DNA from: Pocillopora damicornis
Lineage: Eukaryota
Length of the DNA stretch: 64,000 nt
Assembly: GCF_003704095.1 (NCBI RefSeq)
Contig: NW_020844152.1
Location: 186,001 to 250,000, forward strand
Direction: 5' to 3'
Shown here: one piece after another, positions 6,001 through 63,908 of the stretch
How positions within the stretch are numbered: the stretch's first letter is position 1
How the letters are laid out: every line of letters starts with the position of its first letter
The notes under the pieces: model-generated
The model's input: only the letters and a program-made list of their open reading frames with translations
Databases searched by the model: none
Told to the model about the DNA's origin: nothing
Translations under genes and position numbers: made by a program

Positions 6001-9000
6001 ATGTTCAATGCTAGTAAAAATTGCGCAATGTCAGTAGCTGCATGCATTCTCATACTGGCTCCTTTGAGATACCTTCTCTTTTCAGAATAAGTTTTATATA
6101 GGTTATGTAAGTTTTTTTGTTTTTGACAGCGTTGTTTTGTTTTGTTTTTCTCGTTATTATCAGGATTTCTCTGCGTGTGGACGATGAGGATCCAGAAGTA
6201 ACAGTATTTGAAAACGTGATGCAGCAGTTGATTCAGACCACTAACGATATGTATCTGGGAGGAATCCCTGAAAACTACATGGATACTGTTAGAATTAGCA
6301 ATATTGACAATGTTATTCTCAATTCTCTGAAGGGCGGCTCCATCCGAGACTTGACTTTTGATCAAACGTGAGTTCAAATTGTACTTTATAGTTTGATGTT
6401 TTTGGTCGTAATTTTAGAAAGAATCGTCTGAATACTTCCTTCAATAACTCATATGCTCCACGCATTTTTCATTCAATGTTTTACCTTCTCGTACCGTTTG
6501 GAGAGATCAATCTGGTCATAGCCGTTGGTATGTTTAAATCCCTATGCAACCAAAGGCAGAGGGGAAGAGCACGCATTAGGTGAACATCTATCGGCCTGAA
6601 TTCGCCGCCGTCATTCCCCCCCCCCCCAACCCTTAAAGAAGAAGAAGAAGAAAACGAGAAAAAAAGGGAAAATCGCTAGGTGTACCGGTTAGCCGAGTGA
6701 AGTCGGTTAATCAAAGTGAAAGCTCGCTGTAATTCACTGCAATGGTTAGCTCATCCGTGCTTACAACCAAGTCTTTTGGTGTAAACGAAGTGGCCATTAC
6801 ATTCAGTGAGCATTACACCCCTTTACATCTCCTTCCCCCCTTCCACCACACCTTGTCACAGCAAATGGAAGTGTGACTCTGTAGTCCGACTCTGTGTTAA
6901 ATGCAACTATTTTTAACGACTGAGGACTGAGCGCTACCAAATCACCCCCACAAAACATTCTGACCATCAAACTTTGTCTAAGCGAGCTTAACAACTACTT
7001 ACTTGCGAGATGGTAATTTTTCCTCACCTCTGCGGTTGATATTCCATTTGATTTGTTCGTTTACAGACTGTTTGACTTCGAAAAGTATAAGAGGAGAAGA
7101 AATGTCATATTTGATAATGATGATTACTCAGAACCGTCGCCTAAGCTGGACATAATTGAGAGTAAGAGACATCTTTCCTTCTGCTAAATTTGAAAGGAGT
7201 GTATTTGAAACAAAGAAAGCTACGTATTGAATGTGTGATGAAGATCATTTCTCCGTGAGGGTTAAAAATTTTGATTTTTTTTTTTCCTAATCGCACGAAT
7301 TTTAAAATTTCGTGCGGTACCGTTTTTTTTCTTTCTAGAATTGCAAAATCATCGTGAGATAAGACTGTTTGGTTTTAGTTGAGTGTGATATAATTCTTAG
7401 ATTTGGAAATTGCAGTGTAAATATGTATGTTTCTTTGTGGATGTATTTACGTCGGAAAACCTCTACCCTGTTCCAGGCGTTCAGTTAGTCAGACGAGGTC
7501 CGATAGTAAACAGCGCGATAGTAGAGGAGGAGTGAAAAAAAAAATCAGGGAGTTTTGGCTCGGGTCGCGAAATGAAGAACCCGACCCAAACCTCTCTCGT
7601 TTTTGTTCCGCTGCTACTATCTCACCGTTCACTATTTCGCTCCGCTTCACAAATTGAACGCCTGGAAAAGGCTTGAAAACCTGCGGGAAAAGTGGTTATT
7701 TTCTTCATATTGTTACACTGGTTTTGTGGTGGGTCGACTGTTCGCTCTGTTTTGCGTCTCCCTCTTGATTCTTTACAGAACCACCAGATATTGGGGAAAT
7801 GACCACAACAACCAGCCCTCCTCCGTCCACAACCACAGGTCCCCCAACAACAACAACATCAACACCAACAACAACAACAACAACAACAACAACACCACCT
7901 CAAGTGTGTCAAGTGCCAGAGAAACCAGCACAAGAGAATGGAACTGGAGTGTTAGGATTTGGTTATGATCTCAATAGTCATGCAATGTATACTGTGACTG
8001 GAAATAAAGTTCTCTCCAAGTTAATCAGTTCGACGTAAGTTGGAGCATCAGTCAATATACAAACAGTAGTTCTGGAAAGTGATGCTTATGCATTTTTATG
8101 GTTTAATTGAGAACGATAGTCACGCAAGAAACGGATTGACGTAAATTTACAGTTCTTAAATATCGTAAAGTGATATGAAATCTCCAATTTCCATACGCGT
8201 CCTGTGGTCTTTTAAAATTGGGTGGAAGAGCGGGGGAAGGAGATTAAGAAACGTTGTGCGGGGTGTTCTTACCTTTTAAGTCTCTTCCGAATGGTAATGT
8301 ATCTTTACATCCATTTTCAGGACTGATTTGAGCTTTGATTTCCGTGCTTCAAATCCGGACGGAATCATTTTATATACCGCAATCGATAACGACAAGCAAG
8401 CGGACTTTATTGTGTGCAATTTGCTAAATGGGAATGTGTCCTGTGGCTTTAGCGCCGGAGGGGGTATCCTGCGGCTCACCTCACCTGATGCAGTTTACAG
8501 TGATGGCACTTGGCACACAGTCAGTTTCGTTTCTTGCTTAGATTTTTTTTGTCGTTTTTTTGTTTGATTTGGTTTTTGTTTATATTATCGTTGTTTTCGT
8601 TATTTTTTGTATTTTTTTGTGTGTTCTATATTTTAATTTCTTTTAGAGTTCATGGAAATATACTTCCCAAACTCAGTTGAGAAGTATTCTGTCACGTTAG
8701 GGAAGGTATGGTGGGTTAAACCGATTATTTTAATTTTTAGGTACAACTCACGCGCGATGGGGTGGACGGCACGCTTTTCGTGGATGGTACACTTGTTATG
8801 ACTGGAGCCGCCGCTGGCTCTCCTAAGTTTATCAATGGACTCAAGGAGCTGTACCTAGGAGGCACTCCACAGGGTTTTGATGCAAAGCGAGTCACGGTCA
8901 GCGGTGTTCCAGTATAGATAACTGTTTTTGTAATACGTCATCAGCACCTAGTAAGGGTACAAGGTTATTTGCGGGGGAGAGAGGGAGGGAGGGGGAAGTT

Positions 9001-10981
9001 AGTTATACCTTAAGTTTTGATAAGTGAATGTTCAAACGTTGTCTCACGATTTTGAGATGTTTCGGTTTTTTTAGAAGAAAATCTGCGTTCTGTTGGTTCT
9101 TGGGTGGTGTCGTGAACCAATCTTTTCTGTACTGTGTGGGTTCTCTCCTCTACGATTATTATTTTGGTTTAATTGAATGTTTACCTCTCTGTTGCCGTAT
9201 CCTGTATTGTTTCAGGAGATCATGAAGATCCTCTTTATTGAACAATTCATCCTGTAAGAGAAAAACTCTCACTAACCCTAAGCAAAACCCTTGTAATAGA
9301 CTTGTTTTGCTTGTTGTCGTAGATACTCGCCAGTTAGCATCAATTACTCATTCACTGTTTTGATTCTTTTCAGGTTGGTGCACGTGCAAGTTTCCCAGGA
9401 TGCATCAGGAACGTTAAAGTCAATAATGACGATATTGGTGAACCTTCAAGTCTAATCAAGGTTCAAGATTGTTACATAGACAGTCCTACTTCAGGAGTCA
9501 GCTTTGACATGGGTGGTGGATACCTGCAAGTTGGTGAGTTTGTACTCAGAGAAATTGATCAAATTAACCAATGGTGTGCCTCTGAGATTTTCTTAAAATG
9601 CTTCCTATGGGTCTCCTCGTGCCCACTCGTCCCAAAAATGCTGTAAGCACCTGGATCTGAAAAAGATTAAATCTCTCAGGTTGGTAGTTACTAATCAATA
9701 TATTTTTATTATGTTTATTTTGCAGCCAAAACTTACACTGTGGGAATGGATGAAGTGATCTCCATGGAAATAAAACCAACGTCTCACACGGGTCTTCTGT
9801 TATCATCTTCAAATTCCAAGGGAGACTACATTGTGTTAGAGATTATTCGCGGAAACGTACGTATTCCCAATAGCGCATGCTCAATGCTCATTTATCAGAA
9901 CAGTGTTAGGTCATGAAAATGGTAGGGATCGTTCAGCATCGTTAGTTCATTTGAATCGTCTTCCCCCCACTTCTTATCATTCAGACCAGCAAACTGAAAG
10001 AGTTCTTTATTATTTGTTGCGAAAGGTGATCTTCCGGGCAGAAAATGGCGGGGGGCAGCTGGTGGTGGAGAATACTGCCGAGGATCCTCTTCGACTCTGT
10101 GACGGACAGTGGCACAAGATTAGGGCCTGGAAAGAAGGGAATTTGGTGAAACTTCAAGTTGACGAAGGAACAATACTGGAAGGTGAAAGAAAAGGATCTC
10201 AAACCAACGCAAATATCTACGACCCTCTGTATGTCGGAGGTCTCCCAGGTAGGTACATGGTGCATGCGTAGTTAGCCTCTTGTCTGTGATTCAGTTTCCT
10301 CGTTGATGACTATGTGTGGTGTTCAGTGATTTTGTCTCCTCGCCATGAAGGAATCAATCTTAGAAAAACCGTGTCTTCATACTCCTGCATTTTACACGAC
10401 CTCGAAGATGGAGTAATCGTGAAGGAAACGTGCTGAAACTTATGTTTTCAAACACTGCTACGACGGTTTATGTTCCTTTATCAACTCCTTATCAATAATC
10501 AACACAGTATCTTAAGAAATAGACACTAATGAATAACTTACCCCAGTCGCATGGCTCAGCAAAGCTTACATAACTCTTTGTTCCCCTTGGTCAGCGTTTC
10601 TATTTACCCTCCAAAGAATAAGTTAAAATATATTTTATATATTTTATAATTCGTAACAGCGCTCTCTTGTATTTCTTCAAATCAACATTCGTGATCCTGT
10701 TATTATACGATTTGCCTGCCGATGAAGCGCAAGTAAAAGTTAACAACCTTTTTTGTTTGTTCAAGTGATGTGGTGTCTCTTAATTCCTCTCTGACCCAAT
10801 ATATTGAATGTTTTGTCCTGCAGCGGGTGTAGAGGCTAAAGGTGTGACGGCTACCGAGAGGTACACGGGTTGCATACGTAACTTGGAGTCTAAAGATAGA
10901 AATGCAGCGAAGTCTCTGAAGCTTGCCAATCCTGTGGAATTAGGTGGAAATGTTTACCTTGGAGGCTGTCCTTACAACTAA
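1..10981 (+). CDS. Laminin alpha chain, 3' portion (end of coiled coil plus LG1-LG5), probably alpha3/5 (LanA) type; 5' end lies outside the window
   Basis: Phase-consistent GT-AG exons: <1-208, 546-631, 949-1535, 2375-2618, 3175-3695, 4273-4375, 4648-4803, 5308-5450, 6164-6367, 7067-7161, 7779-8034, 8321-8519, 8741-8896, 9374-9533, 9726-9856, 10026-10248, 10824-10981 (TAA). Heptad coiled coil followed by five LamG modules (FRTTSSNGIL, YNDGKWH, DGTWHTV, CDGQWH, LYVGGLP, YTGCIRNL), a Thr-rich LG3-LG4 linker, and C-terminal ...GGCPYN*. Confidence 0.93.
310..496. mobile_element. Degenerate TTAA-CCCTT (piggyBac-like) MITE family copy
   Basis: Begins taactcccaagat and ends ggggtgaaaggataa; internal similarity (ggaatttgg..gatcaa) to the 41152-41337 copy. 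Confidence 0.5.
2150..2256 (-). mobile_element. Penelope-type terminal-repeat fragment with a minimal hammerhead-ribozyme motif (2210-2254)
   Basis: Minus strand reads GACT-CTGATGG-TGAC...GTC-GAAA-CG-TC-AGTC: stem I GACT/AGTC, stem II GAC/GTC, core CUGAnGA with one mismatch. Confidence 0.62.
2677..2946. mobile_element. MITE-like dispersed repeat (related fragments at ~19690-19850, ~22410-22480, ~58975-59150)
   Basis: Imperfect terminal inverted repeats agagcagtgtctaattaaatgtcg / cgacactcatttgaaaatttctc; shared internal agccaat(c/g)ag and catctgatt(t/g)g motifs across copies. Confidence 0.5.
5585..5828. mobile_element. Hairpin-containing dispersed repeat (MITE-like), copy 1
   Basis: ~46-bp inverted arms 5691-5736 / 5782-5827; near-identical second copy at 14546-14872. 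Confidence 0.75.
7464..7673. mobile_element. MITE with terminal inverted repeats
   Basis: cctgttccaggcgttca ... tgaacgcctggaaaagg; internal gggtcg/cgaccc hairpin. Confidence 0.6.
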
Positions 10982-11399
10982 TGAACTATTTCCTTCACTA
11001 TCTCCCATTTGTCTATTCAATTAGTTTGTGGTTTAAAGGCAAAAGGCTCAAAGGTTTTGTTAATGTTTTAAACCAATTTTTTATAATTTTTTCACTTTCC
11101 TATCACGAAGTAGTTTAAAAAACTATGCCAGTCTAGCGAGATGTGTTTCTTAGATACTGGCGTAAAAAGATTAAGAATTCATTTGAATTCCTAACACAGC
11201 ATTTTATCTTGATAACATGTTACTTTCATGTTGGGAATAAAAATCTTACTTCAGTTTTGCAGTGTTTTCCTTTCTGCGACGATAATACCATATGGCAATA
11301 AACATTTGAAGTTGCTATTCCTCCTCTTTTATCCACCAGTACACATATAGTTCTTCCACCCTGAGGACACATGCTCCCCACGAGCATCGATAAACTATT

Positions 11400-13685
11400 T
11401 CCTTGCAATATTAAAAGGGGAATTTTTGGACCCACAAAAGAGCTGCGACTTAACAACTTACTCACAGTAGACATCTACCACAAGCTAATTCAATTTTTGA
11501 AACTCATTGACAAAATTGTATTGTTTCAATATTCAGACGAGATTTTCTCAGCCCACACAAGAGCTGTAACTGACATTTGCACATAGAACAGAGCTAACCA
11601 CGCTCTTGCTAACGCGCTATAACTGGTCGCAGAATCCCCCCATTTCGCGGAGTTATAAACGAATGAATATTGCAACAAGTGTTCAAGCTCATTAACGAAA
11701 TTCTATTGTTTCAATATTCAGGGGAGATTTTCTTTGCCCACACAAGAGCTGTAACCTTCATACTTACTCACAAAACAAAACTGACCACGCTCTTACTAAC
11801 GTGCTAAAGCTTGTCCCAGAATTCCCCATTTTTTTACAGAGATATAGACACATGAATATTGAAACAATAGAAATTCGTCAATGAGCCTTTGACAAACGGA
11901 GTTTTCAATTTCATCAACGAAATTCTGTTTTTTCAATATTCGGAGGGGAATTTCTTGGCTCACACAAAAGCTGTAACTTTGACACTTCCACACATAACAG
12001 AGATAATCACGCTCATTCCCCATTTTTACAGAGATATAAAGGCATGAATATTGAAACAAAAGAAATTCGTTAATGAGCCTCTGGCAACTTGTTGGAACCA
12101 CGACTAAAACGGAGTTTTCAAGCTCATTAACAAAATTCTATTGTTCAAATATTCAGAGGGGAATTTCTTGGCTCACATATAAGCTGTAACTTTGATACTT
12201 CCACACATAACAGAGATAATCACGCTCTTTCTAAAGCATATGAAATTATCCCAGAATTAATTATTTTTACGGAGATACAGAAGCATGAATATTGAAACAA
12301 TAGAAATTTGTTAATGAGCCTTTGGCAACTTGTTGGAACTACGAGCAAAACGGAGTTTTCAAGCTCATTAACCAAATTCATTGTTTTAATATTCAGAGGA
12401 GATTTTCTCGGCCCACACAAAAGCTGTAACTTTGATACTTGCACACATAACAGAGCTAATCACGCTCTTCCTAACACGCTATAAATTATCGCAGAATTCC
12501 CCCTTTTCGCGTGAATGTGTAAACGCGTGAATGCTAAGACAACAGAAATTCGTTAATGAGCGTAAGTTGTTGGAACCACGAGCAAAACCGTGTGTTCACG
12601 CTCATTAATGAAATTCTATTGTTTCAATATTCAGAGGGGAATTTCTTNNNNNNNNNNNNNNNNNNNNNNNNNNNNNNNNNNNNNNNNNNNNNNNNNNNNN
12701 NNNNNNNNNNNNNNNNNNNNNNNNNNNNNNNNNNNNNNNNNNNNNNNNNNNNNNNNNNNNNNNNNNNNNNNNNNNNNNNNNNNNNNNNNNNNNNNNNNNN
12801 NNNNNNNNNNNNNNNNNNNNNNNNNNNNNNNNNNNNNNNNNNNNNNNNNNNNNNNNNNNNNNNNNNNNNNNNNNNNNNNNNNNNNNNNNNNNNNNNNNNN
12901 NNNNNNNNNNNNNNNNNNNNNNNNNNNNNNNNNNNNNNNNNNNNNNNNNNNNNNNNNNNNNNNNNNNNNNNNNNNNNNNNNNNNNNNNNNNNNNNNNNNN
13001 NNNNNNNNNNNNNNNNNNNNNNNNNNNNNNNNNNNNNNNNNNNNNNNNNNNNNNNNNNNNNNNNNNNNNNNNNNNNNNNNNNNNNNNNNNNNNNNNNNNN
13101 NNNNNNNNNNNNNNNNNNNNNNNNNNNNNNNNNNNNNNNNNNNNNNNNNNNNNNNNNNNNNNNNNNNNNNNNNNNNNNNNNNNNNNNNNNNNNNNNNNNN
13201 NNNNNNNNNNNNNNNNNNNNNNNNNNNNNNTTAACGAAATTTTATTGTTTCGATATTCAGAGGGGAATTTCTTGGCTCACACAAGGGCTATAACTTTGAC
13301 ACTTCCACACATAACAGAGATTATCACGCTCTTTCTAACGCATATGAAATTGTCCCAGAATTAATTATATTTACGTAGATATAGACGCATGAATATTGAA
13401 ACAATAGAAATTCGTTAATGAGCCTCTGGCAACTTGTTGGAACTACGAGCAAAACGGAGTTTTCAAGCTCATTAACAAAATTCTATTGTTTCAATATTCA
13501 GACGGAATTTTCTCTGGTCACACGAGAGCTGTAACTTTGACACTTGCACACATAACAGAGATAATCACGTTCTTCCTAACACGCTATAAATTATCGCAGA
13601 ATCCCCCTTTTCGCGGAGTAATAAACGCGTGAATATTAAAACAATAGAAATTCGTTAATGAGCCTTTGGTAAGTTGTTGGAACCA
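11400..13685. repeat. ~240-bp tandem satellite with a 33-bp internal inverted repeat, interrupted by assembly gaps
   Basis: (a/g)agctgtaac recurs at ~11561, 11746, 11968, 12181, 12421 and at 13286/13526, a 240-bp period in intact units. N-gaps at 12648-13230 and 13686-13785. Confidence 0.9.
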
Positions 13686-13969
13686 NNNNNNNNNNNNNNN
13701 NNNNNNNNNNNNNNNNNNNNNNNNNNNNNNNNNNNNNNNNNNNNNNNNNNNNNNNNNNNNNNNNNNNNNNNNNNNNNNNNNNNNNGGTAGTAAAAAATAT
13801 AATTGGCATGCTCTCGCATTTCATTTCGTGAGATGGTTGACTATGCATGGGACCAGGAACCAGAGTAAGATTTCAGGGGGAGGTGGAGGTCTCGTTCGAT
13901 TCTCGTATTTCATGTACGTGACATGTTGTCGTTTCGCCTTATTTAAGACATTTATGCCTTGTTTTAAAT

Positions 13970-14066
13970 GGTTTTAGGTAGTTTGCAGTGGCTGTAGATG
14001 TTTTTAGGTGGTTGTAGGTGGTTGTAGGTGGTTTTAGGTGGTTTTAGGTCGTTCCATGTTTTAGTA
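13970..14066. repeat. 10-bp minisatellite (GGTGGTT[T/G]TA)n
   Basis: Repeated taggtggttg/taggtggttt units ending in gtcgttccatgttttagta. Confidence 0.7.
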
Positions 14067-34242: not shown

Positions 34243-37200
34243 TCAAGACCCTGGAGACTCTGTCTCCATTGACTTTTTCTGTAGAGAAAGCATCAACTGG
34301 AGAAAACGAATTATGCTATTAAGCCGTTCAAGTATAGAAGTCATCCCTAAAATAATAAGTTTGGGTTTATCCTGAAGTGGTAGTGCCGCAAGTACCCACC
34401 ACATCCAATCTGGTCCATTGTTGCACAGCTGAATATCCTCTCTTAAGGCTGGGATGGGTCCAATAGCATTCATGATGCACTGTTGCTGCCTGGATGTCAT
34501 TTGACTGAACCAAGTCTGTAATGTGTTGTGGCCAGTTCTGTTTAGTTCGTGGAGTTGTCTGATCTCATCTGCATCCTCAACCTGTTCATCCTTTAGCCAT
34601 TCAACAGTTGCTGTATGGTAACCATCCAACATACCCCTTGACACAACATGGAAACGCTCTCCCCCTTCTGTATCCACAATTGAACGACCATCAGGAAGAA
34701 AATTCACTGACTTGATATTGAGCATAGTACCATAATCTGCAAAATTCTTGTTTGAGTCATCACTTGGGACACACATGCCAAATTGCTTTGAGCCTGAACT
34801 GACACAACGCCGTAACATCAGGCGATACCGTGGCTCAAATATGTGCAAAGGACATGGAACTTTTGGAACAGCTAGGGTGCAGACAAAAATAGGGACTTGA
34901 GCATGGCCATCTTTTCCCACACTGAAGAGGAGGGAAAAGACATGAATTAAGTTCTAAGTGGTTGGTTCAACACTTTAATCACCAACTAGAATTCAATAAC
35001 TGATGCCACACTAATAAGTGAGCTTTTCTATAAAAAGAAACAATTTCAAGGCTGAAGGTACCATTAACCCCTCTGGTGGAAGCTATATTGAAAGACAAAC
35101 AAAGTGCTGCATAAAGGTAAGAGAAATAAAGCAAAATTTCCCCACAGCCAGTTCAACTTTGACTTTAATCAGGGATTAAGTTGTTAATGTCATAGTTTTG
35201 ATTGAGTAGGAAAAAAAGCAATTACAATAAAATCCATGTCTAAATTATGACTTATGCCTCATATATTCTACCAGGAGAGTGAGTTGGTTTGTTATGTTCA
35301 AGTGCACTAAGAGGAGCCTAAATAGAAAATTGGCATCACAAAGAGAGAAATCAGGTTATGTGTCAGTGAAGATGAGCTAAATTTAAACAGAATCAAGTAA
35401 ACAGCCAAACAAAAAATAAGAAATAAACAAAATTGAAGCCAATACAGAGGGGAAAAAGACATTTCAATACTACCAAGCAGACGGTTCATGAATGTATGCC
35501 TTGCAGACCTATTTTAAAGATGGCTACCTTACGTCCCGAAACAATCAATTAGAAATGTTCAGTTTTATTAGGCCAGAATGTTCTTACATATGTATATACC
35601 ATTCCCAAAACTGGTTAATTGTACAAAATAGGAATCGTCAATTTCGCCTCTTTAAATGTCAGGTTTTTCCTTTACTTTTTCGCAACACACGTGAAAGTCG
35701 GCTAATTACATAACGATCTTTCAATTATATAACCATTTTTCTTTCTTTTCCCCCAAGACTGTCGACCATGAAAGACATGCAACTCAAAGGGATGGAAATG
35801 TTTCTCTCTAAAAATAATGTGGTTCCTATCAATCGTCGCACCAGAAAGGCGATTTTACGACTCGAAAGTAAAGTAAAGTTTACTTCCAGGAAGATTCACT
35901 GACGCAACAAACTGTTATGTAATCGTTATGTCATCTTCATTCTAAAATTGTTACCCACCTCGCGAGTTTCTCGATGCTTTCTTGATAATTTCTCTTCCTT
36001 TCGTTATAATATGCCGTGAAATAGTTGACCAAAATCAACTCCAGTACTTCAGTGACTTCCATGTTTGGTACTCCTCGGTCGTATTGATCAAGAACCGTCC
36101 GACAACATGGACATTCGACGCGATGGTCCAGGCATCGCTCCAGACATTCTCGACAAAAAGTGTGTCCACATATTGTAGTTATCGGTTGAAATAACAAATT
36201 AAAGCAAAGTTTGCATTCAAAGTCATCTAAATCTTTCAATTTATCCTCGTATGTTACTCCTGCTGTACAGTTTTCGCCCTTAGATTTTTTGTTTTGTTGT
36301 CTTTCGAAGTTACTGGGAGCTTCCTCGCTGTTTGAAAAGGACCGAGATCTTTGCCTTCTCCGTTTGAACATACTTCCAGACTGACTGCTCGAACGTTTTG
36401 AACAAGTATTTTCGCCAGAGTTATTTTTACTATTAACTTCTCCACTAAATGATCTTTCACCACCATGGGCAAGGGTATTGAAGTGCTTCCCTACACTTCC
36501 ATTGAGTGCTTTTTCCTGCGGTGTCGCAACAAGTTTAGTACCCGCAGCTCTGAGTACCAGCAAAGTCCTATTCGAGTTTGTGAATTTTGGGCTCAACAAT
36601 TGATGCAAGCTCTCTGTGAACTCCCGACGGTATCGCTCGCATCCAGGCGCTAGAGCAGAGCAGCGCAACAAAGCTAACACACTCTCTTCGTGCTTGGATG
36701 AAAGAACTCCTTCGTGTTTAGCACAGTTCGCTAACACAGCAGCTTTCCTGTAGACAGTTCTTGCTGAAGTAGGGCGAAGTTTACATGCTTGCTCGATGTC
36801 TTGAAGCGCCAACTCAAATTGTTCAGTTTGGAGAAGTGCATCAGAACGCCAGCACAAACAGTGAAAATCATTAGCAGATACCGACAGGATCTTGGAAAAA
36901 CAATCAACAGCTGATTTCGCGTCGTTCTCAGAGAGATGTTTATGTCCGACAAGTTTATCCACTTGATTCTGAAACTCCGAGGGAAACCATTTCTGAATGG
37001 AGTTCGTGATTAGTAAATTCACTGAGTGTTTCATATCTTCCGACTCAAACTTTCCGCATTTCGTACACTCCACTCGACCGGTGAACGAACGCTCCTCAAT
37101 GAGGCAACTTTGACAAAATGTATGACCGCAGGAGAGGGTGACTGGCTTCAGAAAAAGGCACTGACAAAGAGAGCAAATTAAAATATTTCCGCTGCTGTTT

Positions 37201-37445
37201 ACCACTGGAGAACCTTTTCCTTCTTTCCTCTCTTTACATAGTTTGTTTCTTTGAAATTCCAACAGTGCGGTAACCAAAGATTCGATACGTTCCTTTGGTA
37301 CAACTCCAACACGGAAAGCATTTGAATAAGCACTGAACGACTGATCGAGTTTTCCCTTTCGAGCCAACAATTCTCCCTGTTCCAAAAGAGAATCGAGAGT
37401 ATTCTTTTTTGCATAACTTTTCTGGTCCCTAGACAAGTTTTCCAT
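34243..37445 (-). CDS. LONRF: LON peptidase N-terminal domain and RING finger protein (RING-TPR-RING-LON)
   Basis: Two exons, 37445-35959 and 34921-34243. CSLC..PVTLSCGHTFCQSC..C, TPR-like helices, ECKLCFNLLFQPITTICGHTFCRECLERCLDH..CPCCR, PIFVCTLAVP..CPLHIFEPRYRLMLRRC. Confidence 0.94.
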
Positions 37446-47279: not shown

Positions 47280-49904
47280 TTATAATTCATCGTGGCTTGA
47301 ATCTTCAGGCTCATCCTCAATGAAGACTTTATAATTTTTCATAATCTCATCCATGGTAAGTTTGCCATCTTTGTCTTCATCAGCCTCTTTTATGAGTGTT
47401 TTAGGTTCTTCAGTGGAGAAGTCATCATCTGGGAACAGCCAGCTTTTCATCTCTTCTTTGTCTAGTTTGCCATTCTTGTCCTTATCAAAGTTGTTGGCGA
47501 AATCCTTTTCCATTTCTTCTTTAGCGTCATCATTTACATCACTGAATGTAGCTGCACAATAAAATTTAACAAATAAATATGAAATACTAATGTTGACATT
47601 GGGGATGGATGGTTAGGACCGGAGCAGGAAAAGCCTGGTGAGAAGTTTTCTCACTCAGTTCCAGGCAGGGTAGTTTATCTCACTTCAATGGTATTTTTTT
47701 TACCTAAAAATTCTTTCTTTGATATTTGACCATCCTTATCTTTGTCGTGTTTTTTGAGGCTATCTTCGATGGTAAATTCCGTCATTCTTGGATTATCCTG
47801 CAAAACAAATAAAACTATTATAATTTTGCCTATTTTGACCTGATTATTTTTTTCATGAAAGGGATTGTGGGCTTTAATCAAATAATATTTCCTCGTACCC
47901 CTGGGTGGTAAAACGCCATGTATTCCTCCAAGTCTAAATTCCCGTCTCCATCTTCATCAGCAAATTTAAATTTTTCTTCATCTTCTTTCATTTGTTCTTT
48001 AGCGTCTTCATCTTTACCATCATCAGAGAAATGACCTTTTTTGAATTCCTCCCATGATACCTTGCCATCTTTGTCTGCCAACAAACGTTAACAAATTTGT
48101 ACGTCAAATACTGGCAGTTAATATCACCACTGGTGCCGTTGCGTCTGAAAATGAACGCAAGCGTCTAAAGTCGGACTTCCGAAAACGGGCACAAGAGTTT
48201 GAAAAACGGCCAAAAACGGGACCATAACGTCCATTGTCTGAAAACGAACGGCGCCGTCCGAAAACGGATGGAAGTGTCGGCAATAGAATAAATCCGTTCC
48301 AAAAACAGATGTAAGTGTTCGAATATTAAGTTTAATTTACGCAAGCCTAATGTTCTTTAAGCAACCAAACTAAATATTGGTTTAGAACTAAACTTCATAT
48401 ATATACTAGTTGTTTGGGTGGTCCGCCACGGAAAAGCTAAACCTAATTCTAAACCTTATAGAACTCTTGGTTGTCGATTAGTACAGGGAAGAATTATAAC
48501 TCACCTGACCAGTGACCAGTGAGAAGAGTGACCAGCTAATATATTGTATGAGCTAAAATATACCAGCATATACTGACCCTCATCGTGTTGTTTCATGGTT
48601 TCCATGACTTCTTTTTTCCTGTATTCCTTTGTAGTTACGTGAAATCTCTGTCTGATCTCATCCTCTGTCAACACTCCGTCCTTATTCAGATCTACTTCAT
48701 CTTTGATTAGTTGCGCCAGTTTGGTTTTTGCGTCTTCGGGGGAAAGCCCTTTGAATTCAGTGTAGTTGTCTCCTGGAGAGGGTTTGAGAGGATTCAACAA
48801 TAAGACAGTGAGAAGTGCTGAGAAAGACCATTTGAGAGGCTAAATAAAAATTTTAATCTCAGTTACAGATGATATTGGCGCAGGAAAACTTAAGTTATTT
48901 TTTTTATTACTACGTTTCCTTTTACCGCCCCCCTACAATACCGTCCCTACCCGTCGGATGTTTTTTTCTCTGACAAAGAAGCAAATAAGTCACCTGTGTC
49001 ATAATCTATTCCCCTCAATACCTGTACCTGAATTTTAAGTTTGTAAAACAGTTTTGTAACATTTAACTTTTGCATTTTTAATCGCACGAGCACAGTAAAA
49101 GAAGGACAATGAAACAAAGTTCAGGGGTTAAATTCAACCTTCTCCCAGCGCGAAATGTTTTGCGACTTATTTAATTTTTCCTTCTTAAATGCTGTACACT
49201 TTACATTCCTTACCATTAATTAACACTTCCTTAAAAACATCGCAAATCCGGTTTTCAGAAAGGCCATCTCCGAAAATTTCGAAAAACCTTGATGCCCTTG
49301 ATTGTAAAACTTGGAAGTTCAAAAAGTAACTAAATGGCTGCATTGACAAATATTTCCTGGGAAAGCTCAAGTTCTAAATTCACAAAGCTCTCCTTTTCCT
49401 TTCTTTTCCAACACCTGTCCCAGTATACTACTTAAAAACTTAGTAGGTATCCAATTAATATTTGCTATGAACTCTCAAAGTTCAATTCATTCCAAAAAGG
49501 CCGGGTTTAATTATATTTATCGAGCCAGATTTTTAATGTATTTTACATAGAGGTGTCTTGGCGAACAGGTGATGACCAGAGTGCAATGCTAACTTACCTA
49601 AAAATGCGTCGTGTTCAAGGTGACTTTGATCATTTTCATCTTCTCCTCCATCATCTCCTTGACTTTCATCTTCTTCATCATCATCGTTGTCATCTTCCAT
49701 TTTATCGTCGTCTTTTTCCTCATCCTCTGTTTCCTCCTCATCAGCAGGATTCTGTTCGTCTGCATGGTCTGCCATTTCTTCATCGTGTTCGTCTTCGTCG
49801 TGTTCATCTTCTGAATGTCCAGGCTTCAAATGATCATCTTCCGTGAAAGCAAAACTCACAGTGATACCTAAAATTAACAGAGCTAACCACCAAGAACGAA
49901 ACAT
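47280..49904 (-). CDS. CARP1: Coral acid-rich protein 1 (signal peptide, Asp/Glu/His-rich region, CREC/calumenin-like EF-hands, HDEL)
   Basis: Exons 49904-49598, 48772-48578, 48074-47899, 47797-47704, 47551-47280. MFRSWWLALLILGITVSFA signal, EDEHDEDEHDEE..DDDEEDE acidic tract, CREC motif HDAFLG, six EF-hand loops (DLNKDG, DEDKDG, DEDGDG, DKDKDG, DKDKNG, DEDKDG), HDEL*. The CARP1 name is recognised from memory. Confidence 0.9.
48135..48325. repeat. Degenerate short tandem repeat (tcYgaaaacg core) in CARP1 intron 2
   Basis: Recurring gtctgaaaa / tccgaaaacgg / aaaaacgg units in a CpG-rich patch. Confidence 0.5.
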
Positions 49905-50875
49905 GTCGATCAATCAGATGTAGTTTTGCTGTGCTCTAAGGTTGGAGTTATTACAGCTCTTTGTTCTTTATAATGTGATGTCCGAACCAAGACAGCGAAG
50001 TTCAAATTTAAGACACGTGTATTTGGATTTCGTAGCAATGCGTGCCGCTTTTGGAGTGGTAGGTAAAGCTAAACATTACCAGCTCTCTCATCCTTAGCAC
50101 AATGTTTTGGTTCTCATTAGATAGAACATAAATGGAACACCTTGGTAAACATATTTGGCATTCATAGATTGGATGTGAAAAGAAAATAATTGAATATTTA
50201 AACTTGTAGCAAATTAGCCACTTCAATTCAACTGTTCTTTCTCGCGTAACCAAATGGTTGGTTGTCCAATATTTTTATGCTAAAGTTAAAAGTGTTAATG
50301 ATTAGTTTGGTCGACCAGCGCTGGTAATTGAGACCCGAAAATTGATTAATGCGGATGAAGATCTAAAAGACTGCATCAAGTGGTTTGAAAGCAGGTAGTA
50401 TTGGCATTCAATTAAATAGTGATTTTGAAACGTAAATCAGTAATATTGGTGGAAAGGCTAGTTACCTGTAGACAACTTCTTTGTAAAAATTATGAAAAAA
50501 AAAAAAACTTCCCTTTTTACCTTCTCCAGTTATATTGACATATGAAACTGTTCTTTCCGAGAGCACTTTAAAGTGGTTTATCATTTGTTTAGCGGCATCT
50601 ACCCTCTGGTCTTACCCGACATGACAAACAATCCATGACTTCTCCAAGCTGCAAGAGCTGTTTTGTCCACGTTGTTATGATTAAAGAACTTTTGGAACAG
50701 GACTAAACTAATAAGTCACGATTAGTGAGAGAAGGAAAGGTCGACTTTCATAACAAAGGCGTGGTCTTTAGCGCCTACGGCTCTTTCTTAGGAGCTGACG
50801 GTTAAGTGATAAAGTAATCAAATGTTTCACCCTAATTCACAAATATCATGAAGGCTGACGGGTAGATTTTGGCGG

Positions 50876-50951
50876 TAGAGCGGGAGGGGGAGTGAGAGGG
50901 ATGAGCGGGGGGGAGGGGGAGTGAGAGGGATGAGCGGGGGGGAGGGGGGTG
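50876..50951 (+). repeat. G-rich purine tandem repeat (~29-bp unit) with G-quadruplex/H-DNA potential
   Basis: gagcggg(n)agggggagtgagagggat repeated about 2.5 times. Confidence 0.7.
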
Positions 50952-51903
50952 AAAAGGCTGATTGAGACGAACAAAAAAGAATGAGGGCTTCGTTGGCGAA
51001 AAAAGAGGTTTCGTGTGTTTTGCCTCCGGAATAAAAGTATGAGACGGTGAAAACGACGTTATGACCACCAAAGAGGCCACAGCTTGCAAAGGAAACACGG
51101 TGGAAAAAATGATGATGGTAACAATGATAACGGCATACAACACACTGTAACACTGTTTAATACTTCTGGCTACTCAGAGGTTTACCAAAACAAAGTACAC
51201 TTTTTCCACTATTTCGAGTTATCATGGTGAAATTCTTTGCATGAGTTAAAAGAGTTTCAATTAAAGAACAATACCGAGGTAAATGGAAGAAAAGTTATAT
51301 TTATTTGTAACAGAAAGGACTCGAGAACTGTGCACTATCGCCGATAAAGAATCGACGATAAAATACGCTTTACGTGACTGATCGTGAAAAAGAACTCACT
51401 CTCAGAAGGTATGTGCACAGAAATTGTTTCAAGCCCGATCAGCCTAAATAGAAATTGTTTTTGGCTCAAAAACCAGAACAAACTGCTATAAATGGTTACA
51501 GAATTATAATATCTCTTGAATTGTTTTAGCATGGGTCTAGTTTTTAACTCGGACTGTGGCTCTTCAAGGCGACGTCAGGTGACACGAATTCATGATGGGA
51601 CAATGTCACTCAATTACGTAGAATATATTTTCAAGTGAACAAAAGAAGACTCTGAAGAAATAAATTAAACAGTAACTACCGTCAGTAACTTAAAACGGGA
51701 AAGGTAGCTCGCAAGGTTTGTTGTCACTTTGGCAATTTCAAATGAGTTACACATATCAGGTAAAATTCTACAGCCCAGTACAGATGCAAAATAATAAACG
51801 TGAAGTATCACCAAAAGCTGTTCGAAAACGAACAGTGAGTCGTGAGTTTGATTGTCTCGCTTTTGTTCTGATAAACTTAATACATTGGCAGTTCAACTGG
51901 GAT

Positions 51904-54630
51904 TTAGAATCCTTCTGTTATGATTTCTGATCTCCTAGCAACGTCCTTAGTAACACAAGTTGGATTTGCAGGATAGTCATCTTCGTCGATGAAGAATTCC
52001 GTCTTGGTTGGTTTCTGGCACCACGTGGCAAATGACGATGCAATGGATTTATGCTGCACCTTGATTGAATTCCATTGAGCGTTAGAGATCACTTGTCCAT
52101 GATCAATACACGAATCAACATACAGTCCGATATTTGATGAGGCGAACACGGGCTTCATGGCTTTTAACGTTTTACTTCGGAATTTCTTGATCAGCTTCAC
52201 TTCTTTCTTGGAACATTTGTAAGGAGTAGAAGCACAAGGGATTTCCCAGATGTGACTCAACTGCCACGAGTCGTACAAAGAGTTCACGACAAACAGACGA
52301 CTTTTAACAAAACGTAAAAAGTACTGAGGGAAAATACATTTCCACAGGTCTTTCCCTGACATCTTCTTGACGCACTCTTGAGGGACCCCATCCGTACAGT
52401 CATGAAGCTTAAAAACATTCTGCATCGCCTTCCTGAATTTCTTCTGTTTTTTGTGTTTCCGTGAAGTTGTATCGAGGAAAAATCCTGAATCCGCAAGCGA
52501 TCTGAAATGTGCATGCTTGGGGAGTTTTGAACGGACATAATCGGCGTGAAGCATAACAGCGAGTCCTCCAGCAGAGGTACCAGAAAACACAACATTCCTG
52601 GCCTCTTTTAGACTTGTGTCAGACAACAATTCCGATATGGTCGAATCCAAGATTCTGAAGCCTCTAAAATACAACAACGAACCTTCAAACTCTACTGGGT
52701 CAGATCTGTTGCCTGAAAACGACGAACCATCACAGTATGGGAGATACGCCACGTTCCAGTCGTGGAATTCAGGATTTTCTTTAGCACTGTTTGATAAAAT
52801 TCCACCAGGATTACCAAGAGGTTTGAAGAAGAGAGAAGACCCCAGATGCATGCGGCTCCTTCCCGAACAAGCTTTCTCACTCTCGCACCATGCCCCACCC
52901 TGTAAGTAAATAATCCAGTTCTTGCCTGCTTCGGCAGATCCCTGTCTCACATAGTAACCCGGTGTGGACCCATCAAGACATACAGCGCCTATTTTGTCAG
53001 CATCTCTCACAGCGTGGTACACAAACCCGTTTGATGGTTGATTGTAATATTGCAAAAGGGAACTTTCCTCTGCAGAGTAAGTTCCCTGTGGTGCCTGTGG
53101 TGCCTGTGGTGCCTGTGGTGACTGTGGTGTTACTGTGTTGATGATTGGACCTGACGAAGGATAATACACAGATGGGTACTGCGTGGAATATTGTGTGTTT
53201 GAATTGGACTGCTGAACATCCGCTATTGGAATTTGACTTTCATTGAAGTTGTCATGGTGTGATTCCATTTCCTTTAAGTGATGGTCCAGTTGATGATGAT
53301 GATGATGAAGTCTGTTATGGTGATGGTGATGATGATGGTGATGACGTTTATGTTCATGATGCTTCTTTACTTTTTGAGCCTCCATTGTCACATTACTAAC
53401 GCTCCCGTTGAAGATTCCGCTGTCCGCGTGGTGACTGAGGGCTCGAGACGCGTCTGCTTCTTCGGTAAATGAATTATTTTGATGTTTGTGATGATGATGA
53501 TGATGATAATGTTTGTGAAGTTGTTTGTGGTAATGTCGATGTTGTTTACTGTGAAGCTGTTTATGTTCTTCACTATTGTTTCCTCTAAAAACATCCTTAT
53601 CGAGTTTCGAGAGGATTTCTTTCATATTGTGTGCGTAAGCCTTTTTCTTGTGCTCACCAGAAGAAGCTCCAGACTCATCCGAATTTGAGCCGCTTTTATC
53701 TGTGTATCCTTCAAACATAGAGCTTATATCTTCTCCTTTGTAGTGATGGCGGCCCAAAATGTCACTCTTACTCATCCCAGTTTCCTCTTTGTTTTCTTCA
53801 GATACCAACTGTCTTGCCTCTTCGTCAGTAATGGCATCGTCCAAGTAACTGTCATCATCCTCCTCTACTTCTGGACCCAGATCCCCATCGTTCTTGAAAT
53901 CTTTGAAGAGCTTGTCATACTCACTTTCACTGTCCCCCTCAGTAACCTTGCTTTTCTTATAAATATCGCTTCTTTTCCTCTGAACCTCACCTCCCTTTAG
54001 AACAGCGGGTGACATAACCTTCACCTTGGGTTCTTCTTTCTCTTCTTTTTGAGAGTCTTCATCGTTGTCATTTTCTTGTTCATCATCAGTGCTGCCGCTA
54101 CCGTCTTGTGCGTTTAATTCTTTCTCAGGAGTTTCGTTTCGTTCAACCTCGCCTTTACTATCCCCTGAGAAATCTGCACTCGTCTCCTCAGGACTGTCCT
54201 CCCCAGAAGATACCTGAGTCATTTTATCAACTGCCCCACGCGCAGAAGAATCTGTGGTGTCAGACTCTTGAATATCCACCATATAACTGTTTGGATAAAT
54301 TCCACTCCCTGACATGTATTCTTCATGAACTTCTCCACTTCCGCTGGGGTCATCCTCCTCGTTTGGGAAAGTACTTCCGCTAGACTCTTCGTTTTCGTCC
54401 AAACTATGAACCTTCTTCCCATGTGATGACCTAGCTATGACACTCTTTGCAAACTTTTGATCCGTTTGCACTGAGCCAGTTTTGTACCACAAATACTCGC
54501 CAGGTTTGCCAGACTTCGAAATATCTTGTTGAACTTTGCCAATTTCTGATTTCTGAATATGTCTTGAAGACACAAAAACAATCAGTGCTAAAGTGTACGC
54601 CAAACGTACATTTAAGGTGTGGTATAGCAT
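51904..54630 (-). CDS. Intronless secreted 908-aa protein: acidic Ser-Gly region, poly-His tracts, PQA repeats and a C-terminal pectin-acetylesterase/Notum-family esterase
   Basis: Single ORF with an N-terminal hydrophobic segment; AVCLDGS, YLQGGAWC, YCDGSSFSG, LYFRG, GTSAGG (GxSxG nucleophile, 52564-52581), ADSGFFLD, CIFPQY, NSLYDSWQL, SCIDH, YPANPTC. Confidence 0.9.
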   Translation of the reverse strand: MLYHTLNVRLAYTLALIVFVSSRHIQKSEIGKVQQDISKSGKPGEYLWYKTGSVQTDQKFAKSVIARSSHGKKVHSLDENEESSGSTFPNEEDDPSGSGEVHEEYMSGSGIYPNSYMVDIQESDTTDSSARGAVDKMTQVSSGEDSPEETSADFSGDSKGEVERNETPEKELNAQDGSGSTDDEQENDNDEDSQKEEKEEPKVKVMSPAVLKGGEVQRKRSDIYKKSKVTEGDSESEYDKLFKDFKNDGDLGPEVEEDDDSYLDDAITDEEARQLVSEENKEETGMSKSDILGRHHYKGEDISSMFEGYTDKSGSNSDESGASSGEHKKKAYAHNMKEILSKLDKDVFRGNNSEEHKQLHSKQHRHYHKQLHKHYHHHHHHKHQNNSFTEEADASRALSHHADSGIFNGSVSNVTMEAQKVKKHHEHKRHHHHHHHHHNRLHHHHHQLDHHLKEMESHHDNFNESQIPIADVQQSNSNTQYSTQYPSVYYPSSGPIINTVTPQSPQAPQAPQAPQGTYSAEESSLLQYYNQPSNGFVYHAVRDADKIGAVCLDGSTPGYYVRQGSAEAGKNWIIYLQGGAWCESEKACSGRSRMHLGSSLFFKPLGNPGGILSNSAKENPEFHDWNVAYLPYCDGSSFSGNRSDPVEFEGSLLYFRGFRILDSTISELLSDTSLKEARNVVFSGTSAGGLAVMLHADYVRSKLPKHAHFRSLADSGFFLDTTSRKHKKQKKFRKAMQNVFKLHDCTDGVPQECVKKMSGKDLWKCIFPQYFLRFVKSRLFVVNSLYDSWQLSHIWEIPCASTPYKCSKKEVKLIKKFRSKTLKAMKPVFASSNIGLYVDSCIDHGQVISNAQWNSIKVQHKSIASSFATWCQKPTKTEFFIDEDDYPANPTCVTKDVARRSEIITEGF

Positions 54631-55957
54631 GTCTGAAATTGAATCGCAGAGCTCGTCGAGCCTGCCAACAAGTTAAAATCGAATCAGATTTGGCTGAGGG
54701 CAAGTTCTTTGAACTTTTCCTGAGGTAATTTGATGTCACGCAGATCCAGGTACCTGTGTTCTCTCTTTAGCTCTTGCCTTGTTTGTTTTGATAGCAAATC
54801 ATTAAAATAAAGAAATATCGAGAGCTTGGCAGACAAATCTGTTGTTTGTCAAACCAAATCAACCAGGGCAAGATCCACGGTTTGGTTCACAAATCGTCTA
54901 TAATTAATCTTGAGTTAATGGAGCGGGTGGTTTAGCTGTGTAAAACACCACACCACCTGGTGACTTTTGAGTGCTCCGTCAGTAGAGAAGGTAATACTTT
55001 TCACAACAGTACTAAGACATTTAAACAACGATTAAGATGCGCGTGGCATTAAAGTAACCTGTAATCATCGATTAGAGAGTTTTCATTCTGCCTTTCTTGT
55101 GAGAGATCTGTTTATAAATTCTATATCAGTTGTTTTTAAAACAGGTCATGTGTTTTGATATAAAACATATTAGCAATATATTAAATCAGGCGAGTGATTC
55201 CATTCTTATGTGCTGTTGGTTGGATCTGACCGTGAAACGTTCACTTCAGTCTGCACAGAAATATAAAAAGAATGACATAAAATGCTACGCAGTGTACAAA
55301 TCCGACTTTAAAAAAATTAACCGACAAAGAAACTTGAAGAAAATATAGGCTCAGCTCTAGTAAATTAGTAATTAAATACATCCCCATGCAACACTGGGTA
55401 GACAAATTTCGACAGCCTTTGTTCCAAAAAAGCAGTGTAAATGACGCAAATATGTAAAAGATGAAAATTAATAGTTTTTACTTTTAAAAATAGGAAGGTC
55501 AGTGCTAGTGTCTGCAAATCCATTAAAGACAGGCGAGCCATTCATCTAAGACCACTTTCGCATACGAACAGGACGTAAAAAGAGTTTGCCATACAGCGTA
55601 ATGTCCCTGTAGTATTTTTTCACTCCCGTTTTCCAGCTATTTAGAACCTGGCGAGCATATTTCCAATATAAAATTATTTCAGTCGGCCATAAGTCGTTAC
55701 TACCAATTCCTATCCATCCACCATAGCTCAAGGCTCTCTTATTTTTGTGCCGAGATCTCTCCGCTAGTTTCTTTGTACACGTGGTTACTCCCAATCATTA
55801 ATGTCTGACTGGTATTTACTGTAATAGCTCCTTTTTTATCACAATGTGTTGAGCCCCGAGGGTGATGGGCCTCCTTAGTACGATGTCCGGCTGAGGTATC
55901 CCATACTGAATGTCAGAGTTAGTCAGTTGTTACGGTACAACTGTTGAAGGTTGTAAA

Positions 55958-63908
<7,951 letters not shown>

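Follow-up and report, generated by a model that had tools for sequence, protein, structure and literature searches.

Introduction

For animal members of the pectin acetylesterase (PAE) family other than Notum, neither a substrate nor a role is known, and yet these proteins are widely distributed, occurring in sponges, cnidarians, echinoderms, amphioxus and molluscs. Notum itself uses the triad residues S232, D340 and H389 and needs the glycosaminoglycan (GAG) chains of glypican for its placement (PMC8172013). In corals, CARP1 was described as a reticulocalbin-like gene to which an acidic N-terminus had been fused (PMC4878875). The present study concerns a gene of the stony coral Pocillopora damicornis, located at positions 51904..54630 on the minus strand of a 64,000-nucleotide stretch of DNA (assembly GCF_003704095.1, contig NW_020844152.1, positions 186,001 to 250,000 of the forward strand; hereafter the window, to which all positions of the gene refer). 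The esterase gene is genuine, single-copy, intronless and transcribed, and all of its features given below lie on the minus strand. Its product has an N-terminal half of 535 residues, consisting of a signal-peptide-like start, an acidic Ser-Gly-rich region, His runs and a P/Q/S/Y linker, followed by an esterase of the PAE/Notum family in the C-terminal ~370 residues.

Acid-flanked Ser-Gly sites, such as those in the N-terminal half, resemble GAG attachment sites. We consider it reasonably probable that the protein is a secreted serine carboxylesterase of the PAE/Notum family behind ~535 lineage-specific, disordered-looking residues, and that it acts as a matrix- or mucus-tethered extracellular O-deacylase. 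A preliminary description of the locus knew of no account of this architecture, in agreement with our literature search, in which acetylesterase or PAE combined with corals, cnidarians or biomineralization returned sialate O-acetylesterase only, a different family, and no account linking PAE-like esterases with corals or cnidarians. The named relatives are annotated as "uncharacterized" or "pectin acetylesterase-like" only.

Gene structure and transcription

The coding sequence is a single open reading frame (ORF) of 908 codons plus a stop codon at 51904-51906, exactly at the position given in the preliminary description, and its open frame of 922 codons is the longest in the window, with the runner-up at 507 codons. 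RNA contigs were aligned with 50600-56400. One of them (X11 record 8, 3489 nt) covered 51143-54639 and ended in a loose poly-T at 51143, and another (X5 record 15, 3545 nt) covered 51216-54754; both were joint-free and spanned the N-terminal half as well as the esterase, and together they reached from the 3' untranslated region (UTR) to part of the 5' UTR. These contigs outlined an unspliced poly(A) transcript of ~3.6 kb at 51143..54754, with an approximate 5' end and a 3' end at ~51143. The 3' UTR at 51143..51903 contains the poly(A) signal ATTAAA at 51156-51161, and the poly(A) end at 51143 lies 13 nt downstream of it. At least four studies contributed poly(A) RNA runs that contained 86-99% of the words sampled from the esterase-gene stretch. 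No RNA depth was detected in the intergenic bins 50600-50987, which argues against DNA carry-over. The N-terminal half and the esterase were found within single joint-free contigs, which speaks against separate transcripts for the two halves, an outcome that the preliminary description had named as refuting it.

The same description held that every other gene of the window is spliced. This is only roughly true; the window also contains an uninterrupted 502-aa RING/TPR ORF at 35937-37445, and the PAE-family paralogs of the genome are all uninterrupted across the domain as well. The GC content of the esterase-gene region was 0.40-0.44, near that of the surrounding window.

Esterase domain

The only strong Pfam match of the protein was PF03283, the PAE/Notum-family alpha/beta-hydrolase domain, at aa 539-873 (52012..53016; E 1.5e-99), with 333.9 bits against a curated cut-off of 26.6 and a match over profile positions 12-351 of 355. 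An AlphaFold2 model of aa 531-908, built with a 78-sequence alignment, had a pLDDT of 92.2 and a pTM of 0.92, and the top Foldseek matches of this model were all Notum (TM 0.82/0.87, rmsd 2.8). The catalytic residues could be assigned by alignment with Notum: Ser686 in GTSAGG (aa 684-689; 52573..52575) aligned with Notum Ser232, Asp787 in YDSWQ (52270..52272) with the aspartate of Notum FDEAQ, and His844 in DHGQ (52099..52101) with the histidine of Notum GHG. The earlier suggestion of intact Ser/Asp/His candidates was thus borne out, the triad being invariant in 15 orthologs and 78 family members. Further motifs of the domain included CLDGS (aa 551-555), the oxyanion loop GGAWC (aa 578-582) and NPTC, and every motif quoted in the preliminary description was present in the translation. 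The complete catalytic machinery makes O-deacylase activity likely.

All 12 Cys residues of the protein are in the esterase domain, and ten of them are family-conserved. The domain is basic, with a net charge of +14 and a pI of ~9.2. Its basic surface loop TTSRKHKKQKKFRKA (aa 721-735; 52426..52470; model pLDDT ~70) reads SRKxKGQRKFRK in coral orthologs and is less basic in anemones. Within the tree set, the catalytic domains of cnidarian PAE-like proteins, long and short forms alike, had a pI of 9.0-9.8, compared with ~4.7-8.8 in plants, sponges and deuterostomes. The unusually basic character of the cnidarian domains suggests an anionic polymer as the substrate or the surroundings. At the C-terminus, the tail KRSEI(L/F/I)TEGF (51907..51945) had 6 of 13 columns invariant and ended in TEGF in every ortholog; a check of this end revealed neither KDEL/HDEL nor a hydrophobic GPI-type terminus.

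Phylogeny and origin

In a search with the domain, "pectin acetylesterase-like" proteins were matched at E values of 1e-65 to 1e-111 and 33-49% identity. Those of cnidarians, sponges, amphioxus, echinoderms, a hemichordate and a scallop showed 36-49% identity, and plant PAEs 33-37%. Notum, which supplied the only solved structural relatives, was matched at E 3e-31 with 25% identity. The oxyanion loop GGAWC was like the PAE-like family consensus GGGWC, and the corresponding Notum sequence is GGW-x-C. ESM Atlas feature scores of the whole protein did not separate Notum from PAE.

A careful maximum-likelihood tree was built from 48 domains, with the CNDG/CNDN-type genes of the same genome on a long branch as the outgroup. 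The coral proteins formed a clade with 100/100 support, which was joined by a Nematostella ORF (97/85) and a cnidarian-like ORF (locus L014; 97/93). The 450-aa cnidarian paralogs, deuterostomes, sponges and plants (98/98) formed separate clades. A quick tree, to which long forms from the domain-anchored search were added (SH-aLRT 86-98), placed Actinia, Actinostola and Nematostella together as the sister group of the coral clade plus one 1517-aa protein, and Hydra long forms elsewhere. Judging from these placements, the esterase is a cnidarian member of a family widespread in animals. The preliminary description had called the domain plant-type rather than Notum. Its second half stands, in that E values, identity and motifs all favor PAE-like proteins over Notum; its first half does not, since the protein belongs to a cnidarian clade and is not a plant import. 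Membership in the plant PAEs was rejected as a candidate on this placement, the plants being separate at 98/98. Identity with bona fide Notum was rejected as well, on the 25% identity, the E value of 3e-31, the CLDGS and GGAWC motifs and the separate branch of the CND-type genes, in a tree without authentic Notum.

The genome itself was searched for PAE-like domains, and all seven that it holds were uninterrupted ORFs. The only exon-like PAE-family pieces (L010/L011) came from a spliced, more Notum-like gene; exons of that gene, as of the CARP1-like neighbor described below, were searched singly and never joined. The short PAE paralogs have just ~90-180 residues ahead of the domain. The Nematostella ortholog is intronless as well; the lack of introns is a family trait and no sign of a recent event at the esterase locus. 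A retrogene was rejected as a candidate: no spliced parent was found, the seven PAE-like domains are uninterrupted, and the anemone ortholog is a single ORF.

Elsewhere in the genome, three intronless PAE-family genes of 374-387 aa (L007, L008 and L009, contig C2278) lay within ~85 kb of one another and carried CNDG/CNDN Notum-like motifs. They matched Notum at E ~1e-34 and formed a long separate branch, and they may represent a distinct cnidarian PAE subfamily.

N-terminal half and its conservation

The N-terminus (aa 1-22; 54565..54630) is signal-peptide-like on heuristic grounds only, with R9, a hydrophobic core at aa 10-21 and V-S-S before R23, and is kept in all orthologs. It is the only hydrophobic stretch in the 908-aa protein, which has no other transmembrane-like segment. 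The signal-peptide-like start, the ten family-conserved Cys residues, the conserved sequons described below and the lack of a membrane anchor or an endoplasmic reticulum (ER)-retention signal point to secretion.

The whole architecture was kept in ~20 other coral-type assemblies, represented by 20 protein clusters with 49-62% identity over 99% of the length, and a TARA coral metagenome scaffold carried the gene of a protein with 99% identity. Among 15 aligned orthologs, invariant columns made up 47% of the esterase vs. 9% of the acidic region. Behind the N-terminus, the motif DxSKSGKPGEYLWYKTGS (aa 36-53; 54472..54525) was conserved, and 14 of the 37 columns of aa 24-60 were invariant. The following Ser/Gly-rich region (aa 61-330; 53641..54450) is acidic and, by composition and conservation, probably disordered. 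Residues 31-330 contain 25% D+E, 14.7% S and 9.3% G, with a net charge of -39, and 12 Ser-Gly dipeptides compared with 4.1 expected from shuffles, a threefold excess (P = 1.5e-4). A cluster of acid-flanked Ser-Gly sites (DPSGSGE ... YMSGSGxYPxSYM, aa 92-117; 54280..54357) contains invariant S and G residues and is enriched in SG, and in a second site, DGSGS (54091-54105), S178 and S180 were invariant. Seven of the 14 invariant residues of aa 61-220 were S or G of acid-flanked SG sites (S96, S107, G108, S109, G110, S178 and S180). The acid-flanked sites pointed out earlier thus turned out to be the most conserved positions of an otherwise fast-evolving region.

Other conserved islands were a dibasic RKR-S (aa 218-221; 53968-53979), within (K/R)(K/R)RSxIY and with an invariant R220, the stretch SEYDKLFKDF..GDLG (53875-53925), the motif KEILSKLDxDVFRG (aa 337-350; 53581..53622) and, near the C-terminus, K899/R900/S901. 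Strings like KEILSKL also occur in a 461-aa Oculina paralog, in Nematostella (HEILSKLK) and in Hydra (EILS). With its conservation in short islands, the N-terminal half is under selection on short linear motifs, a pattern to be expected of a disordered region that carries modifications.

The His-rich region (aa 351-470; 53221..53580) was defined by composition and the ortholog alignment. Residues 331-470 are 27% His, and the His-rich tracts reported earlier are indeed present, as three runs rather than two (H6 at 376, H9 at 430 and H5 at 442). All 15 aligned orthologs had His runs, the longest being 3-10 residues. Within this region, the conserved ALSHHAxxGIFNGSVSNVT (53386-53442) contains two N-glycosylation sequons. 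The P/Q/S/Y-rich linker (aa 471-535; 53026..53220), defined by composition, includes (PQA)3 at aa 505-513 (53092-53118). RNA contigs of other studies showed in-frame length variants of 18 and 27 nt at 53085/53095 in the (PQA)n repeat. Both this repeat (53085-53120) and the His tracts (53282-53519) vary in length within the species complex. The near-identical proteins of the 90% cluster were 893-910 aa long.

The preliminary description had interpreted the protein as a fusion. A profile of the N-terminal half was searched exhaustively, without a word index, against 1.84 billion representatives and matched the orthologs and their fragments plus two unrelated low-complexity His-rich sequences; in the coral's own genome, the esterase locus was the only match. 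As the profile matched orthologs only, there is no donor gene, and "fusion" is the wrong word. An ESM Atlas search with aa 24-530 gave no usable look-alike.

Two of the orthologous proteins stood apart: P0019 was the most divergent poly-His ortholog, and P0209 was without poly-His. Beside P0019 (L013, 2347-7966), a 439-aa PAE paralog was encoded on the opposite strand together with a reverse-transcriptase/endonuclease (LINE-like) ORF.

Long forms in other cnidarians

Long forms were also found outside the corals. The Nematostella locus (L012) holds a single ORF without interruption, 689 codons in length (692 counted as an open frame), with a hydrophobic start, ~310 residues that include SG sites (ESSGSGH) and HEILSKLK, and then the esterase. 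In the 930-aa Actinia tenebrosa protein LOC116297794, a signal peptide is clearly recognizable, and the N-terminus of 568 aa contains 19% D+E, 12% Ser and 14 SG dipeptides at a net charge of -37; the N-terminus of Actinostola QZH41_008086 (704 aa) has a net charge of -55. The N-termini of the Hydra long forms are less acidic. No His run of at least three residues was found in the anemone (Nematostella, Actinia and Actinostola) or Hydra long forms. A hidden Markov model (HMM) built from the N-terminal half of the coral protein missed the N-termini of the anemones, Hydra and Nematostella, its only weak match being Oculina KEILSxL (E 0.058); such a miss is expected for fast-evolving disordered sequence.

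These comparisons indicate that a signal peptide, a long acidic Ser-rich region and a PAE esterase together form an anthozoan layout older than stony corals, and that what sets the coral-type clade apart is its poly-His tracts and a set of short motifs only. Since non-calcifying anemones have both the acidic N-terminus and the esterase, the extension predates calcification, which weakens a calcification-specific interpretation. The mineral-tethered role proposed in the preliminary description is not supported, and the presence of the N-terminal architecture in non-calcifying animals, which that description had named as refuting it, partly holds: Nematostella, Actinia and Actinostola, none of which calcifies, share the acidic long form. 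For the same reason, an acidic module restricted to calcifying lineages was rejected as a candidate.

Neighboring genes

The downstream neighbor at 47280-49913 (minus strand) starts with a signal peptide and a very acidic first exon, continues with EF-hand exons and ends in HDEL at the C-terminus. By these features it fits the published description of CARP1 and is CARP1-like. The order of the PAE gene followed by the CARP1-like gene was kept at three other loci, L001 (same species, 8531-11204), L002 (14361-17729) and L016 (17889-18185), which span both major branches of the coral clade, L002 belonging to the other major branch. No such linkage was found within 10 kb in L013, L015 or the Nematostella locus L012. 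The linkage is suggestive of a long-standing arrangement; shared function does not follow from gene order. On the cnidarian-like scaffold L014, which encodes a 614-aa long-form PAE, an EF-hand exon (854-1063, minus strand) lies ~5 kb upstream on the opposite strand and resembles the CARP1-like gene (37% identity, E 2e-13).

Upstream of the esterase gene, the last exon of another minus-strand gene, mostly 3' UTR, occupies ~54780-56036, with a splice junction at 56036 that appeared as a loose end in all four RNA runs. This gene is probably ELP3, as suggested by a RELHVY-containing ORF at 57108-57284. No more than ~100 nt separates its 3' end from the 5' end of the esterase gene, and RNA contig X1 record 6 crosses both. 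Farther away, 34243-37445 (minus strand) contains the uninterrupted 502-aa ORF, which encodes TPR and two RING fingers, and behind it a 225-aa ORF whose product has a LON substrate-binding domain; the two are probably one LONRF-like gene with large exons. The GC content of the 2-kb bin 12001-14000 was 0.243, vs. 0.33-0.44 elsewhere in the window. An Rfam search of the window gave no match.

Published accounts of coral skeletons were searched by name for the terms esterase, pectin, Notum and His-rich. None of these terms was found in the main texts of the skeletal-proteome papers PMC4890752 and PMC7115838 and a 2026 Desmophyllum preprint, or in the supplements of PMC9532382 and PMC7115838, a name search that entries labeled "uncharacterized" would escape. 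The text supplements of a coral cell atlas contained no PAE term, and a spatial paper on Pocillopora acuta contained no relevant term.

Discussion

The data suggest the following course for the secreted O-deacylase that we favor. The protein would pass through the secretory pathway, where its N-terminal polyanion would be heavily modified; candidate modifications are GAG chains at the invariant Ser-Gly sites with their acidic flanks, N-glycosylation of the conserved NGS and NVT sequons and perhaps Tyr sulfation or Ser phosphorylation. The coral-specific His-rich segment may add metal- or pH-dependent binding, and the modified tail together with this segment would hold the strongly basic catalytic domain in an extracellular layer of anionic character, for example mucus, extracellular matrix or the organic matrix of the skeleton. 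In that layer, the enzyme would strip O-linked acyl groups, with acetyl as the likeliest, off a glycan or glycoconjugate. As for its N-terminus, the most likely origin is growth in place of an extension inherited from hexacorallian ancestors, not a gene fusion. As for the parts of this proposal, actual GAG attachment is possible, although we lean somewhat against it, and a role specific to the skeleton seems unlikely.

Several points weigh against this interpretation. The substrate, GAG attachment, metal binding and secretion are all predictions from sequence, the putative signal peptide comes from a heuristic, and we know of no O-acetylated cnidarian glycan that could be named as the substrate. 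The careful tree contained no authentic Notum sequence. The RNA contigs are assemblies that cannot alone prove one molecule, although the poly(A) end and the intergenic bins without depth are what a transcript would give. The full-length AlphaFold2 model, built with 15 orthologs, had an uninformative pLDDT of 36, over the esterase too; this value reflects the shallow alignment and is no evidence of disorder.

A different activity was considered for the same domain. Like Notum, the protein could be a lipid deacylase that cleaves the fatty acyl group off a lipidated ligand outside the cell, for instance secreted Wnt, with its own GAG chains in place of the glypican tether. The Notum fold of the model and the shared triad are consistent with this activity, as is the alignment of the Phe of DSGFFLD with the region of a Notum pocket residue, and Notum is likewise held at the cell surface, via heparin/sulfate-binding sites (PMC8172013). 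Nevertheless, the distance to Notum in E value and identity is far greater than that to PAE-like proteins, the oxyanion loop is of the PAE-like kind, CLDGS stands in place of CNDGS, and genes closer to Notum exist separately in the genome (L007-L009 of the CND type and the spliced L010/L011), so that we regard a Notum-like lipid deacylase as very unlikely. It is also conceivable, at a similarly low probability, that the product is a precursor cut by proprotein convertases at dibasic sites (RKR-S at aa 218-221 and KRS near the C-terminus) into two products, one a peptide or proteoglycan that is acidic and rich in Ser-Gly, the other a His-rich esterase. Such processing, which would be compatible with the secreted O-deacylase, could account for the invariant R220 and the conserved K899/R900/S901; however, the furin consensus R-x-K/R-R was not found in the protein, and conserved basic residues have many other explanations.

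With regard to origin, a recent retrogene or a transfer from a plant or alga, for example from a dinoflagellate symbiont, would explain why the gene is intronless among spliced neighbors, why its motifs are plant-like and why plant PAEs are among the named matches. Retroposition or ancient transfer, as the preliminary description proposed, is nonetheless contradicted by the sequence comparisons and appears exceedingly improbable: intronless paralogs (seven of seven PAE-like genes uninterrupted across the domain) and the one-ORF Nematostella ortholog speak against it, as do the cnidarian grouping apart from plants, the occurrence of PAE-like proteins from sponges to the scallop, the GC content near that of the window and the retention of conserved host neighbors. 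A role in calcification, in which the acidic and His-rich scaffold would bind growing aragonite or organic matrix while the esterase remodels matrix polysaccharides at the calicoblast-skeleton interface as a functional pair with the CARP1-like neighbor, is likewise unlikely in our judgment. In line with such a role, the coral-type clade alone has the poly-His tracts and the set of conserved motifs, a CARP1-like gene adjoins, the gene order is kept in L001, L002 and L016, and existing genes that gained an acidic region are known among those of coral biomineralization (PMC4878875). However, the acidic N-terminus with its esterase is shared by sea anemones and so predates calcification, 25% D+E over aa 31-330 is modest for a coral acid-rich protein, the skeletal-proteome papers name no such esterase, gene order alone is no proof of shared function, and L013 and L015 show no such linkage within 10 kb. 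More speculatively, by analogy with plant walls, where calcium cross-linking is under the control of pectin de-esterification, stony corals might have made an ancestral anthozoan secreted esterase into a self-anchoring "proteoglycan enzyme" of the calcifying matrix, in which a GAG-bearing tail and a coral-specific, His-rich, metal- or pH-switchable segment would position an activity that de-acylates matrix polysaccharides and tunes their calcium binding, co-inherited with the adjacent CARP1 gene; we think this decidedly unlikely.

The esterase thus has a real, conserved and unusual tail on a known enzyme family, and nothing yet ties it to a particular process. The coral-specific poly-His and the CARP1-like linkage provide a testable, currently weak link to calcification; if the protein is a mucus or digestive-gland enzyme, it would be an ordinary lineage-specific elaboration of a secreted hydrolase. 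For the animal PAE members, the coral esterase offers a well-defined entry point, being single-copy and expressed, with an intact active site and conserved positions that are candidate glycanation sites, and its lack of introns makes the gene easy to clone.

Among described systems, the animal "pectin acetylesterase-like" proteins, including Stylophora "pectin acetylesterase 7-like" (448 aa), have PF03283 in common with the coral esterase (41-49% identity) and carry its set of motifs. The anemone long forms, as the sister group, share the signal peptide, the long acidic Ser-rich N-terminus and the C-terminal esterase, but they have no poly-His runs and are undetected by the coral N-terminal profile. 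Plant PAEs are in the same Pfam family at 33-37% identity, are secreted and carry the motifs CLDGS, GG-x-WC, YCDG-SF-G and G-SAGG; they differ in forming a separate clade (98/98), in being without the long N-terminus and in being near-neutral or acidic, in contrast to the basic coral domain, and pectin is, to our knowledge, not a cnidarian polymer. The N-terminal half has conserved Ser-Gly sites with nearby acidic residues, as a proteoglycan core would, and in composition and motifs only (SGSG, DFSGD, DGSGS and poly-His beside acid) it resembles syndecan- or serglycin-type cores and His-rich Ca/metal binders such as HRC and HRG; unlike a homolog of these proteins, it matched orthologs only in the profile search. 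CARP1, amgalaxin and nacrein similarly have an acidic N-terminal region joined to a pre-existing domain (PMC4878875), whereas the acidic extension of the coral esterase is already present in non-calcifying anemones and its attached domain is an enzyme. Notum, with the only solved structure of the fold, shares the Ser-Asp-His triad, is secreted and works with sulfated proteoglycans (PMC8172013), but it is only 25% identical and has GGW-x-C and CNDGS where the coral protein has GGAWC and CLDGS. Notum binds the GAG chains of glypican (PMC8172013), whereas the coral protein may carry its own; if the tail does bear GAG chains, the enzyme would be its own proteoglycan, in contrast to the glypican-reliant Notum.

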